A stretch of 63,223 nt of DNA, the filler included, from Neoconidiobolus thromboides FSU 785 (taxonomy: Eukaryota; Fungi; Entomophthoromycota), in NCBI GenBank assembly GCA_025603075.1. It is 10 parts of 10 records of this genome, joined end to end, with 100 filler letters (N's around TTAATTAATTAA, not from the genome) between each part and the next. Parts side by side here need not be neighbours in the genome. Positions count along the whole stretch, not along the records: positions 1 to 21,098 come from MU626547.1; 9 more parts are not named here. The stretch is one strand, 5' to 3'. A program made the translations under genes and the position numbers. Below are positions 3,321 through 13,177 of this stretch, in pieces; within the stretch, counting starts at the first letter, position 1; every line of letters starts with the position of its first letter. The notes beneath the pieces were generated by a model. The model was not told where the DNA came from. It saw nothing but the letters and a program-made list of their open reading frames with translations, and made no database searches.

Positions 3321-6300
3321 ATGCAAGGGATCAGCGATTATATAACCGGGTTAATGGGAGGTGAAAGTCTACATAAGAGATTAAGCAGCTACATTTTAAA
3401 ATGGGTTTTGGGTTCCTTTTTACTAAATGATATTAAAGATCAGGATTTTCAATTAGATAGAAATGATTCAAAGTTTAAATTATTTCAATTGGAAATTGAT
3501 CCAAAAGTAAATATTTCGTCTTTTTTATATTTAATATAACTGTCTTTAGGCTATTAATGAACTATTACCAAACCTACCCTTTAAGTTTTTAAGTGGAAAG
3601 ATTGATAAATTGGAATTATCGATTCCTTGGCGTGCAATTGCCCAACCTAGTTGTGTAATTTTATCTGGTCTAAACGTTGAGTTGGAATTACAACAAGTAG
3701 AAACGATAATAAAAGGTAAAATTCCAATAACTTTTTTAAGTCAATTGTTAATTTTAAAAGAAGAATTTGATTTAAAGTCCAGTATCGGGGAATCGAGTTT
3801 ATTTATGGCAAATAGTTTTATTGTTGAACAAGGTGATGAGATACCAGATATACCAGAGGTTAAAGATAGCGCTGAAAAAGCATCCATGATAAGTGGTTGG
3901 ATTGAGAGTATAGTTAAAATGTTAAAAGTTTGTATTTATGATGTCCAAATAAGTATCAAGCTACCAAACAATAATAATAAAATAGTACTAGAAGTAGACA
4001 GTTTAATATGCAATGAAGATTTATTATTAGCAGCAAATGATATTGATAAGAATCCTATTGCTAGAGTGTTTGAAGTCAACGAACTAAAACTATTTTTCAA
4101 TTCAGACCTTCTATTAAAAGGCGAAGGTGTTTTACTTAAGTTAATTGGATTATCAGACAAAGAGAGTGAAAGGACGTCATCACTATTTGCAAAAAAATTC
4201 AACAATTGTACTTTAGAAATGGAATTAAATAGTATGGAATTATTAATATCACCCAAGCAGGCTAAGGAAATATTTTGTTTTATTGATAATATAAATGAAA
4301 TTATTAATAAAAATGGAGTTAAGAATAACGAGAAAGAAAATAAAGAAGAAGTCGAGGATATTTATTTAAAAGTATTTATGGAAATTAAAAAGATTAACAT
4401 TCAATTGTTTTATTTACCTCAAAGTTTTGAAGCTGAATTCGAAGCAACAAAACATTCACACTTAAGATTATTTTCTGAAGTAGTTATAGTTGAGTTCGCT
4501 AGTGTGCCAAGACCACCAATGGTATCTATTGAAAGTATTTATGAAGGGAGTTACAGAAAAGATATTCAATTAAATTTCAATTTCCAAAAGCTGATGATAG
4601 ACGAATATCTTTCATATTTTGAAAATGAGGCTGAGCTATTAGAAAATCAATTCAGTTTTCAAAAAGATAGTTATCTACCAATTCTATATTTTGATGAAGA
4701 ACTTCAAAGTTCAACAGATTATTTAATAAAATTACCTGTTGTTACAAAAGATGGTAAGGTTAATGTGGATCAAGACAATATAATTTCTTCTGGAATACCT
4801 TCTTTATATTCAAATAGTTTAGATTCTAACAATAACTCTTTCTCTTTTGATCCGGATGACTATATTGATGAAGTTAAATTTCAATTAAAGATTCAACTAT
4901 TTTTAAGTAAGTTTTATTATTTATTATATACGAAATGAGTTCAATCTTTAACAACAATTGTAATAATAATAATAAATTAGATTTAAAAAACACATGCATT
5001 ATTGATGGAGAGCCTATATGTTTACGTGTTGATCCTAGAATGATTGATCGATTTGAGTATTATTATCATATGCTGATGCCATTTTTTGTAAATAACCCTA
5101 GTAAAGAGGAAAGTGATAAATATAACAACATTAATTTTAATACATCCAATAATAACATATTTGATGATATTTACATAATGAATGACTTGGATATGAGAAA
5201 CAATAATTCACCTAAAAAGAAAAAAAATTGGGAAATTGAGTTAAAATCCAATTTTGTTCGTTTAATTATATTTACACCAGCAACTGTACTCGGGGAAGAT
5301 ATCTTATTAAATCATAAGTAAGTTTCTATTCTATATTAATAAATTAAATTAAACATTAATATTAATGGTTTTATAGAATTGGACGAATACATCAAGATTT
5401 TTGGATAATGGATATTTTAAAACCAAGAATTATTTATCCAAAGATAATTAATAATAATGAAGAAAAAGAAGAGATTTCATTTAAAATTGATTATCATTTA
5501 TTAGATATTTCATTATATTTAAGAAAAGAAAATGAAATTTATTGTTTTTTGAGTATTTCTCCAATGGAAGGATATGAAAAACTAGGTTTACCGAATTTAG
5601 ATATTACTTTATTAAGTAATGAAAATATAACAGAAAGAATTAGTTCACCTATAATCATTAATCGGAATCCTAATTATTTTGACACTTCATTATCACCATC
5701 AACAGCATTACCAGTACCATTTCCAAAAGTATTTCAAGGATTTATTGAAGGGGAAGTTAAATTATTACTTAAAGGTTATGAAGAAGAAGTAATGGAGTTT
5801 AAACAAAAAGTATTGAATTTTACTAAAGTTATTGTCTCCACTCATTTTCAAACAATATTAATTAAATTTGACAAATTACATTATGACAGAAATCAATTTT
5901 TAGTCAATGATATATCTTCTTATGAGCCTCATTTTTTAAAATTTAAAGAGATGGAATTAGAATTTGAGGATTCAAATTCTTTTTTTACAGCTGAAGAAGA
6001 TTATGCTTCAAAATATAGATCAACGACATTTTCAAATGCTGAAGAAAAATTTGATAATGAAGGGAATAATTTAAATTTATCTTCCTTATTATGTTTAATT
6101 GTTGCTATGCCTCATTGTAATATTGTTTATTAAATATTATTTAAAATTTTATTAATTATTTTTTTAGTGGATATTCAATTAGATTTCAAAACAGGAGAAT
6201 GTGATAATTCATATACAATTAATTTTTCAGAATGTCGATTTTTTTCAAGTAGTAAATTTCAAGGAAAGGTAACTAATTTTATTTAATTCAATTAATACAA

Positions 6301-9550: not shown

Positions 9551-11944
9551 TCAAAGTTCATCATGTTCTTCTAATTCTTCAATTGAATCCTCTTCATCTA
9601 CATCCACTTTAACTTCTTGATTTTGTTGATATTCATTATTTTGATTTTTAACATCTGGATAATCTAATTGAGTATCTAAGCCTAATTGTAAACGAATTAA
9701 TATTTCCACTCTATCAGCATAAGCTTGAGGGGAAGGTAAATCATAATCAGATCTTAACATTGAAGTTTGAAATAATAAATGAGCCATATCAACCATATTT
9801 TTGTCCATTTGATTATTATTGATTTTAGCTAATAAATTTTGAATAATTTTATGATGTGGATTTAATTCTAATCCTTTTTTAGCGTTTAGCCATTTGTTCA
9901 TTTCAGTTTCTTGTTGAGATGCATATGCTTGTGCTTTCATCAATCTTTCTTGATTACCACTTAATCCACCTAATGTAGAAGGTGTAATTGCTGTTGGGGA
10001 ATAAATTAATCTTGTTGATAATTTAACGGACTCAACTTCTTCTTTCAATATTTCATTAAACCAATCAATCAATGGTTTGTACTCTTCTTCTAATTGATTT
10101 AATTCTTTTTTATTATCCTTGACATCATTTTGAGCAGCAATAGCATGAACTAATTCTTTTCCTTTATATTTTCTTAAATATTGCATTGTAAATTCATCCA
10201 CTGGTAAATCCATATAAATTACTTCATATCCTAAAGATACTAATTTTTCAACATAAGGGGAACGTAATAAAGCTTCCATTGAACCACCTGTAATAAAATA
10301 AATTTTATTTTGGTTTGGCTTCATTCTTTCAATATATTCATCTAAAGAAGTAAATTTTTTATGAGATGAATCAAATCTTAAGAATTTAGCTATCTTTTCA
10401 GAATGATATTCATCTTCACGAATACCTCTCTTTAAATGAGCTCCAAAGTCACCTAGAAATTTTTTATATTTGGTTTCATCTTTAGTTATTTGTTCAAATA
10501 ATTCAAACGATTTATTTAATAATTTTTTCTTAATAACTCTCACTAATCTTGAATTTTGAACTGTTTCTCTAGATACATTTAATGGAATATCATCACAATC
10601 CACAATCCCTCTTAAGAATGCTAACCAATCTGGAATCAACTTAATAGTATCATCTGTAATAAACACTCTTTTGACATGTAATTTAATAGGGGTATCAATG
10701 ACTTTTGGTAATTTTAAAGATTCAAAGCCCAATTCAGGTACATAAATAATAGCTTTAAAATTACTATCCCCTTCTGCTTTAAAATGAATTTGTTGTAGCG
10801 GTTGGCCAATATTATCGTTTAATCGTTGAAATAATCTTAAATGTTCTTCTTGAGTGACATTCTTGGGATTTTTAGTCCAAATTGGTGGTTCTAAATTCAT
10901 TAATTGAAATCCTTCTACTAACTTATCTTCTTCTGTGGCTTCTTCTCCAGTTTCTTCTCCAGTTTCTTCTTTTATTTCATTCTCTACATTATCTTTATCA
11001 GATTTTTTAATTTCTTTTCCTTTTTTCCAAAGATAAATTGGGAATTCAATGTATTCACTATATTTACGAATCAATTCTTCCAAAAATTCTGGTTTTAAAT
11101 ATTCTTTGGCATCCTCTTTTAAAAATAGAGTAATCTGAGTACCTCTACCTAAAGTATTACCTCTTGGATCTTTAACAATTGTAAAATCCGAAATAGCCGA
11201 AGATTCCCAAATATATTGTTCATCTTCCGAATTTTTAGAAATTACTTGAACTTTATCAGCAACTAAAAATGCAGAATAAAACCCTACTCCAAATTGGCCA
11301 ATTAGATGGTTATTATCCTTATTGTTTTCAAATTGTTTAATAAAATCAGCAGTCCCTGATTTAGCGATAGTGCCTAAATTTTTCTTTAAATCATTATAAG
11401 TCATACCAATTCCTGTATCAGTAATAATTAAGGTATTGGTAGCGGGATCAGGTTTGATTGTTAAATATAAATCTTTAGCTTCAGTTACTTTGGATTTCTT
11501 GGTCAAGGAGAGTAAACGTAATTTATCTAATGCATCAGAACCATTGGAGATTAATTCACGTAAAAATATTTCTTTGTTTTTATATAAAGAATGAATAATA
11601 ATATTCATAACACGACTATAATAAAAATATTGTATTAGTATCATATAGATTTATTTGAATAATAACTAATTTGTTACCTAACTTCGGTCTATTTATTTTA
11701 TTAAAATAGAAAATTAAGATGTTAATAAACAGTTTGATAAATAATAATAAGGAATCTTTACCTCAAATTGAAATTTCTTCTTAGTTTGATCTATTTCTTT
11801 AATTTGTTCTTCATTTAGTTGTACACCTTCAGTACTGTCCTTTAATTCAATATCAACTACTTTATCTTTAGAAGTATCACTTCCAAGGACAAAAGTGATG
11901 CTTAGTAGGCTCAATAATACTAACCAAGAGAGATTGAACTTCAT
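9551..11944 (-). CDS. HSP90B1: ER Hsp90 (GRP94/endoplasmin), 3 exons
   Basis: Signal peptide MKFNLSWLVLLSLLSITFVLG. Spliced [32 protein letters not shown], plus DTGIGMT, IGQFGVGFYS and GIVDCDDIPLNVSRE motifs and C-terminal HDEL. Exons are 11762-11944, 11678-11688 (11 nt) and 9551-11615. Confidence 0.95.
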
Positions 11945-12207
11945 GATTAAATGTAAAGCACTAAAAGAGAAGAAGAAAGATAATTAATATAAGATTAAAT
12001 GAAATTAAAAGTAAATAGTAAGTTTGAATATTACCTTTTAATTCAAACCTTGATATTTTATTTATTAAAATAAAATTTGTTAGATTGTTAATTCTTTTTA
12101 TACTTTCTTATTAGTTTGAAACTTGTAGCCAGTTATTAATAATATGCAAGATTGAATTCATGATTGATATTTTATTCTTGAAATTTATCATTACTTTCAT
12201 TAAAAAT

Positions 12208-12229
12208 CCAATCTTCACTTGCCACGTCA
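12208..12229 (+). promoter_or_regulatory. ERSE-I (CCAAT-N9-CCACG) overlapping a UPRE-type TGACGTGG upstream of GRP94
   Basis: CCAAT at 12208-12212, 9-nt spacer cttcacttg, CCACG at 12222-12226. CCACGTCA at 12222-12229 reads TGACGTGG on the gene strand. The site is ~265 bp upstream of the GRP94 ATG. A TATAAAAAG lies on the minus strand at 12094-12102. Confidence 0.65.
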
Positions 12230-12842
12230 CAATTTCTTATTTTTTTTAATAATTTTTTTAAACATGAAATTGGAATCATTCACTGTTATTTGAAATTAGT
12301 AAAATAATTGCCCAATAATAAAAGTTTGGGTCAGTCTTAGTTTATCATCAGGTCACTAAACACATCAGCTGAGAAACATGATAAAGTGTAATGAGATATG
12401 ATGCTTTTTTTAATATTGTTTAAGAATAAAACCGATGGAATCAGTTTAATGTGAGATTTTTGTTAAGAATAGTATTTTTTAATGATATTTTGAGTAAGAT
12501 ATAATAGTACAAAAGTCATTAAGAATTTGTTTTAAGAAGATGATTTGGTATGGGAACTATTAACTAATGAAAAGGTAATCAAACTTTCTATTGCTTTCAA
12601 TATTTTAGTTCTGAAAATTGAATTCTTCAAGTTTTATAAAATATTAAATTCAATATCAGTAATAATGTTAACATAGATATTAACTATTTCAATCATACTT
12701 ATTTTTAAAACTCCTTTTATTAATGTTGGAAACAACATATAAATCGATAAATTGATTTTTTTTAAATTTCATTTTACTTTTTCAGAATTGATCATTTGCT
12801 TTCGAAAATCTTTATGATATTAGCTGTCATTAACGTTTTAGA

Positions 12843-12948
12843 ATATGGGGATGTTTTTTTTGGCTTCATTACTTTTTCCATCTTTTAAGCGCTATTTGAG
12901 TGGAAAAATTGTTAGTAAAAATTTTAAATACAAAATACACCCCTATAT
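12843..12948 (+). mobile_element. ATAT-flanked MITE family copy
   Basis: Near-consensus, ATAT both sides. Confidence 0.85.
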
Positions 12949-13177
12949 TATAAATAACAAATAACCCAATGAAACTTTCATCAAATATAGACTCAAACAA
13001 TATATTTGTATAGAAATTTTTATATTAAATTCAATCAAAGTTCATTTTTAACTACTTCATGACCCAATCACATGAAGTAAAGAATTAAAAATCAGTAATA
13101 ATATATAAAAATACAATTAAAAAAAAGTAAAGTTAATAATTGAAAAATTGACTATTTTATTATAATTAAAAAAATAC

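Follow-up and report, generated by a model that had tools for sequence, protein, structure and literature searches.

The proximal promoter of GRP94 in the early-diverging fungus Neoconidiobolus thromboides FSU 785 (Entomophthoromycotina) contains an exact ER stress element (ERSE), CCAAT-N9-CCACG, which overlaps a UPRE core of the XBP1/Hac1 type. At its simplest, the site is likely to be a functional Hac1/XBP1-type UPRE. The best explanation of the arrangement as a whole is a genuine UPR cis-element, in which the bZIP core and the CCAAT box form an ERSE-like module; judged from the sequence, this is probably correct. The two-part reading as an 'ERSE' is the weaker half of the claim; it is plausible, with support that is statistical and falls short of proof.

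Textbook accounts contrast the yeast UPRE, which uses Hac1, with the metazoan ERSE, which uses NF-Y together with ATF6 or XBP1. No prior description of an ERSE, or of CCAAT-N9-CCACG, in fungi was found in the open-access literature. The window analysed here is a stretch of 63,223 nucleotides, composed of ten parts of the genome joined end to end; the element lies in the first of these, a 21-kb piece of contig MU626547.1 with approximately 24% G+C.

The GRP94 gene and its transcript

The gene next to the element is encoded on the minus strand and is GRP94 (endoplasmin). The protein has HSP90 and HATPase domains (PF00183, PF13589), an N-terminal signal peptide (MKFNLSWLVLLSLLSITFVLG) and the C-terminus ..EEHDEL. 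Its sequence matches the entry 'heat shock protein Hsp90 [Neoconidiobolus thromboides FSU 785]' with 100% identity; the animal matches that carry a name are vertebrate endoplasmins, with 44–46% identity over 93% of the length. Domains, signal peptide, ER retrieval signal (HDEL) and endoplasmin homologues all place the protein in the GRP94/HSP90B group, and the initial annotation of this locus was right to name it as the GRP94 of an early-diverging fungus. Several lineages of fungi have lost HSP90B (GRP94; PMC1525184).

The structure of the transcript was derived from spliced RNA contigs of three public runs with unlabelled conditions, which were used for structure only; the 5′ ends of these contigs give a lower bound for the transcription start. 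All exons lie on the minus strand. The first is non-coding and covers at least 12035–12139, with a spliced contig of run X2 reaching 12139; transcription of GRP94 starts at or upstream of this position. A 74-nt 5′UTR intron follows (11961–12034, GT..AG on the gene strand), seen as the joint 11960/12035 in runs X2 and X5. The next exon (11762–11960), defined by sequence and RNA contigs, carries the start codon at 11944 together with the signal peptide and what remains of the 5′UTR. An 11-nt micro-exon, ACCGAAGTTAG (11678–11688), located between the two sides of the joint 11618/11762, encodes part of ..TEVS..; across this region, protein P0001 reads FQFETEVSRVMNIII. The main coding exon (9551–11615), recognised from sequence, domain and homology matches, ends in ..EEHDEL and the stop codon.

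From the minus-strand ATG at 11944 to the start of the element the distance is 264 bp, in agreement with the approximately 265 bp first annotated. Since the first exon reaches at least 12139, the element is at most 69–90 bp upstream of the 5′-most spliced RNA. Between the element and this RNA end lies a TATA-like sequence, AATAAAATAT (12167–12176, minus strand), approximately 30–35 bp upstream of the 5′-most RNA contig end; it is a candidate by position only, in an AT-rich context.

Sequence and rarity of the element

The ERSE, CCAATcttcacttgCCACG, occupies positions 12208–12226 on the plus strand. In a pattern scan it is the single match to CCAATCTTCACTTGCCACG in the 21-kb piece, and none of 100 dinucleotide shuffles contained one. 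The element is antisense to GRP94, so that the gene strand reads CGTGG-N9-ATTGG. Its CCAAT box (12208–12212, plus strand), which the gene strand shows as ATTGG, is a possible site for Hap2/3/5 (CBC/NF-Y) and lies approximately 69–73 bp upstream of the 5′-most RNA evidence. At the other end lies the XBP1/Hac1/Cib1-type UPRE TGCCACGTCAC (12220–12230, given for the plus strand), the core of which, TGACGTGG, is found at 12222–12229 on the minus strand, that is, the gene strand. This core agrees with the XBP1/Hac1-type consensus (TGACGTGG/A) and overlaps the ERSE. It is also a single match, and 2 of 100 shuffles reach one. The initial annotation of an exact ERSE overlapping a UPRE is thus borne out, with both parts present as single matches.

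The pentamer CCACG occurs three times in the 21-kb piece. For the full ERSE, the expectation from base composition is 5.3e-8 per position, which corresponds to 0.0022 for both strands of 21 kb and to 5e-5 for a 600-bp promoter. The rarity claimed initially therefore stands, although the figure attached to it, approximately 0.01 per window, was a fourfold overestimate, in the conservative direction. The N. thromboides site has the sequence of a type I ERSE and, like such elements, belongs to the proximal promoter of a gene for an ER chaperone.

An Rfam search of 11900–13700 gave no family, and ARAGORN found no tRNA in the whole 21-kb piece; the element is therefore not part of a known RNA gene. 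ORFs that overlap it have only 29–39 aa. There is no divergent gene in the annotation; the upstream neighbour, Rav1p_C, lies on the same strand as GRP94 and ends at 13637.

Orthologous promoters in the Entomophthoromycotina

Corresponding sites, all on the gene strand, are present upstream of GRP94 in three relatives. These are CCAAAaatttgttcCCACGTCA in Massospora cicadina (L001 3704–3725; TATA box approximately 45 bp downstream, ATG at 4001), CCAGAaatttgttcCCACGTCA in Entomophthora muscae (L002 4240–4261; TATA box approximately 40 bp downstream, real ATG at 4471) and CCATAaatcaattcACACGTCA in an entomophthoralean contig of ERR10900105 (L003 250–271), where the layout is as in the other two. 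The bZIP half, CCACGTCA, is exact in Massospora (L001 3718–3725) and Entomophthora (L002 4254–4261); ERR10900105 has CACGTCA (L003 264–271), 7 of the 8 bases. The UPRE is thus conserved upstream of the orthologues of a UPR target gene. In all three relatives the bZIP half is found approximately 40–45 bp upstream of the TATA box, and in a three-way promoter alignment with a mean identity of 64%, the UPRE block and the TATA box form conserved islands. For the 8-mer CCACGTCA, 0.001–0.005 copies are expected per promoter; the 7.1 kb of GRP94 promoter contain three, and the remaining 107 kb of fetched sequence contain none.

The CCAAT half behaves differently. It is exact only in N. thromboides, and the three relatives have CCAAA, CCAGA or CCATA, with the 9-bp distance kept; classical NF-Y binding to these variants would be poor. 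Conservation in orthologous GRP94 promoters, to which the initial annotation had looked for support, therefore holds for the bZIP half in Massospora, Entomophthora and ERR10900105, but not for the CCAAT pentamer in these relatives. In an ungapped alignment of the four elements, TCCA, TT, CACGTCA and one further A are invariant. TCCA is located at the 9-bp offset in all four Entomophthoromycotina elements, where the chance at a fixed offset is 0.002. The N. thromboides module is oriented the other way round with respect to the gene, and simple descent of an alignable promoter therefore does not account for the resemblance.

These promoters bear on two alternatives. The first takes the bZIP half as a generic CRE/ATF-type site (Atf1/Sko1/Aca-like) that serves general stress or cAMP and has nothing to do with ER stress or, at the extreme, as pure chance. 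TGACG is indeed a CRE half-site, and ACGT cores are bound by many bZIPs, but the G-box-like GTGG half and the flanking GCCACGTCA agree with XBP1/Cib1 rather than with the palindromic CRE TGACGTCA; furthermore, the site is kept specifically upstream of an ER-lumenal chaperone in four species. With 5e-5 expected per promoter standing against chance, we consider this alternative most unlikely.

The main rival to the ERSE-like module is that the UPRE functions alone, so that CCAAT is a coincidence or an ordinary, independent box near −70, with no ERSE-type cooperation. In its favour, the CCAAT pentamer is not conserved in Massospora, Entomophthora and ERR10900105, and CCAAT at other spacings is common in these promoters; in mammals, too, the XBP1-type TGACGTGG is bound without NF-Y (PMC3645738). 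Against it stand a CCAAT at one fixed offset, which has a chance of <1e-3 in this AT-rich promoter, and a TCCA that is invariant at the 9-bp offset across an inverted, non-alignable promoter; it also leaves the excess of spacing-9 near-matches in other lineages (see the next section) without explanation. This rival is a serious one, but on these grounds rather unlikely. An ERSE-like CBC-plus-Hac1 module in N. thromboides is made plausible by three findings taken together: its CCAAT is exact at N9, TCCA is invariant at this offset in the relatives although the module is inverted, and other lineages show an excess of near-matches at N9.

Near-matches and spacing in other fungal promoters

Beyond the Entomophthoromycotina, near-matches at spacing 9 are present in the GRP94 promoters of Gigaspora margarita (CCAATaaaatcgttCCACA at −215; L005) and Lichtheimia ramosa (CCAATttgaatgttGCACG at −167, upstream of its TATA box; L008), each with 9 of 10 bases. 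A second match in Lichtheimia, CCATT..CCACG at −26, falls in the probable 5′UTR and is probably noise. At this spacing, Hesseltinella (L011), Podila (L012) and Phlyctochytrium (L013) reach at most 8 of 10 bases, Gonapodya (L009) and Piromyces (L014) at most 7, and Funneliformis (L010) at most 6. An ERSE-like site is thus absent from the GRP94 promoters of these last six, out of nine independent test lineages; in the case of Funneliformis, there is nothing in the 2.5 kb upstream of a gene model that itself lacks a signal peptide (L010 2501). The near-matches of Gigaspora (CCACA) and Lichtheimia (GCACG) are without the ACGT core, and they are not common to the whole of the Glomeromycotina or Mucorales, being missing in Funneliformis and Hesseltinella. 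For the suggestion that CCAAT-N9-CCACG would recur upstream of GRP94 in relatives, the outcome is therefore divided: near-matches are enriched at spacing 9, but six of the nine test lineages have no site.

The enrichment was assessed in several ways. First-order Markov resampling gives a probability of 0.007–0.04 per test promoter for at least 9 of 10 bases, and of 0.0005 for N. thromboides. In a spacing control with CCAAT-Nn-CCACG (n = 0 to 40) across 12 fungal GRP94 promoters, five matches of at least 9/10 occur at n = 9, as against 0–2 (mean 0.2) at each other n; this threshold was set after the data had been seen, but spacing 9 also ranks first at 8/10 or better, with 13 matches, compared with an average of 4.0 and at most 10 at the other spacings. 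When the discovery promoter is left out, the counts at n = 9 are 4 (at least 9/10) and 12 (at least 8/10). Location gives a similar picture, with five near-ERSE matches in 7.1 kb of promoter versus one in 107 kb elsewhere. The support for an N9 bipartite architecture is thus real, though it comes from a small sample.

Two further searches were negative. The ERSE-II pattern (ATTGG-N-CCACG) does not occur in the 2–3 kb upstream of GRP94 in Massospora, Entomophthora, ERR10900105, Gigaspora, Lichtheimia or Gonapodya. When metagenomes were scanned with an alignment of 13 fungal GRP94 sequences, the only matches were contigs of mRNA length and bacterial HtpG loci, with no usable promoter; one of these HtpG loci, from a human-gut metagenome record, was left out.

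Comparison with known UPR elements

In mammals, the ERSE is CCAAT-N9-CCACG, the ERSE-II is ATTGG-N-CCACG and the UPRE is TGACGTGG/A (PMC3645738). NF-Y binds to the CCAAT of the ERSE, and ATF6 and XBP1 both bind to CCACG; the UPRE is bound by XBP1 without NF-Y (PMC3645738). With the ERSEs of mammalian GRP78, GRP94 and calreticulin, the N. thromboides element shares the identical 19-bp consensus and 9-bp spacing, the location in the proximal promoter of an orthologue of a classical target, and the occurrence in either orientation. It differs in that its CCACG half continues into a full UPRE, CCACGTCA, and that the nearest relatives have a degenerate CCAAT half; the likeness is one of sequence. 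To our knowledge, no ATF6 is known in this fungus.

Plants possess a similar architecture, with a pERSE (CCAAT-N10-CACG) and a pUPRE (ATTGGTCCACGTCATC) that are bound by NF-Y and bZIP28 (PMC3645738). The two-part CCAAT/bZIP logic and the CCACGTCA core are common to plants and N. thromboides, although the plant elements (NF-Y with bZIP28 or bZIP60) belong to another kingdom, and bZIP28 is membrane-tethered. The initial description of the fungal ERSE as 'metazoan-type' is hence too narrow.

The closest counterpart of the bZIP half is fungal. In Ustilago maydis, ChIP-seq of Cib1, a Hac1/XBP1 orthologue, yielded the motifs T/CGACGTGGAAG and TGACGTGG, which were likened to the human XBP1 motif (PMC6490947), and deletion of TGCCACGTCG from the pit1/2 promoter abolishes UPR-dependent expression (PMC4836707). 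The N. thromboides 8-mer equals the ChIP-seq motif, and TGCCACGTC is base-for-base as in the pit1/2 UPRE; over TGCCACGTCA and TGCCACGTCG, 9 of 10 bases are alike. The extended site TGCCACGTCAC likewise matches the Cib1 and XBP1 motifs given in these two papers, and GRP94 belongs, like the Ustilago genes, to a class of UPR targets. As it equals the Cib1 motif, the bZIP half belongs to the UPREs already established in fungi and is nothing peculiar to metazoans (PMC6490947; PMC4836707); on this point the initial annotation overstated its case. The best reading is that of a Hac1-type UPRE, a motif familiar from fungi that has turned up in a further phylum. Differences from U. maydis are that the latter is a basidiomycete and that a CCAAT partner at fixed spacing has not been described there; the terms CCAAT and NF-Y are absent from PMC6490947.

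The involvement of ATF6, implied at first, is accordingly not needed, because Hac1/XBP1-type factors bind the element sequence in fungi (PMC6490947). This also weighs on a third alternative, according to which N. thromboides would have retained an ancestral opisthokont ERSE circuit that consists of NF-Y and an ATF6-like, membrane-tethered bZIP. Such a circuit would fit the exact match to the mammalian consensus and the ERSE-like near-matches in two other zygomycete lineages; nothing, however, requires ATF6, the ERSE is absent from the sampled chytrids and Neocallimastigomycota, and the like architecture of plants makes 'opisthokont' the wrong level of ancestry (PMC3645738). Taken together, these points render the alternative very unlikely.

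Fungi do offer a precedent for recognition by CBC and a bZIP at a fixed distance. CBC and the bZIP HapX cooperate on bipartite sites with the motif CSAAT-N12-RWT plus a TKAN half-site, in which only CCAAT positions 1 and 3 are invariant and positions 2, 4 and 5 are variable (PMC7144946). This system belongs to the iron regulon, however, and its spacing and half-site are different. A CBC:HapX reading (CSAAT-N12-RWT) does not fit the element itself and was set aside, since bases 13–15 after CCAAT are CGT and not RWT. With the UPREs of Saccharomyces cerevisiae, UPRE-1 (GGACAGCGTGTC) and UPRE-2 (CTACGTGTCT), the element has in common the ACGTG core of UPRE-2, and Hac1 would be the orthologous factor; the yeast elements have other flanks and no known CCAAT partner, and GRP94 is absent from S. 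cerevisiae.

For the preferred reading, a functional Hac1/XBP1-type UPRE with an ERSE-like CCAAT partner, the following mode of action is proposed. ER stress would activate IRE1, which would lead to splicing of the mRNA of a HAC1 orthologue. The Hac1 bZIP would then bind to the core TGCCACGTCA(C), approximately 85–90 bp upstream of the transcription start, and GRP94 transcription would rise. The CCAAT exactly 9 bp away would most likely recruit the ubiquitous Hap2/3/5 CCAAT-binding complex, and the pair could act as an orientation-independent ERSE-like module. The binding proteins, the inducibility by stress and the cooperativity are thus all predictions. Among zygomycetes, Rhizopus is reported to have a likely Hac1 orthologue with a non-canonical, IRE1-type intron (PMC10946435).

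Evolutionary considerations

A bipartite CBC-plus-Hac1 ERSE with a fixed 9-bp spacing may conceivably be an ancestral eukaryotic UPR enhancer of animals, plants and zygomycetes, which has been kept in GRP94 promoters of Zoopagomycota/Mucoromycota and lost or remodelled in Dikarya. This is put forward tentatively. If it holds, the yeast UPRE would be the derived state, and the ERSE would be independent of ATF6. Any ancestry of the ERSE would be eukaryote-wide; otherwise, the elements would be of convergent origin.

The Ustilago precedent already places a fungal Hac1 orthologue on an XBP1-type site. An ERSE-like module in zygomycetes, if true, would close the gap between animals and plants and would suggest that the composite enhancer is older than ATF6; it would also provide a simple, testable promoter for work on UPR wiring in fungi that have kept GRP94. 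Should only the UPRE half be functional, the site would simply add one more phylum to the range of a motif already known from fungi.

Further observations on the loci

The Entomophthoraceae have a second conserved block approximately 60 bp upstream of the UPRE (L001 ~3650–3672, L003 ~180–205, L002 ~4165–4190). On the antisense strand it reads CCAAT-N7-TGCCATTT, with the variant CCAAC..TGCCAAT in Entomophthora; CCAAT-N7-TGCCA also occurs inside the N. thromboides ERSE. The ERR10900105 sequence (Logan contig ERR10900105_11714) begins with GTGGTATCAACGCAGAGTAC (L003 1–20), which we take to be the end of a template-switch cDNA adapter, and the 5′ end of the contig is therefore not genomic; the contig nevertheless keeps introns and promoter sequence.

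Some gene models have problems at the N-terminus. The E. muscae GRP94 model (621 aa, L002 5001) lacks it, and the real ATG and signal peptide are found at L002:4471; the models of F. caledonium and F. mosseae also start without a signal peptide. In Gigaspora, an alternative spliced transcript starts at least 840 bp upstream (L005 2159–2863, via L006), and its exon 2654–2863 holds the ERSE-like site; a shorter isoform (L007) has its start at 2943 or further upstream.

The 11-nt micro-exon of GRP94, with its AG/GT flanks, is kept across the subphylum and reads ACTGAAGTTAG in Entomophthoraceae (L002 ~4733–4743; L003 ~742–752). A 5′UTR intron just before the ATG is likewise apparent by sequence in Entomophthora, Massospora and the ERR10900105 contig. 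In the N. thromboides window, one contig of run X1 overlaps the region of the element (~12204–12261) and continues past 12261 into unlike sequence with no canonical splice site; it may be chimeric or a low-complexity match. Further upstream, approximately 45–57 nt within 12843–12900 are matched by dozens of different RNA contigs with unlike flanks, and the summed depth is very high (approximately 9000 in run X1). Only one copy of this stretch is present in the window, and it matches no Rfam family or tRNA; it could represent a short, dispersed repeat or a UTR module that is shared.
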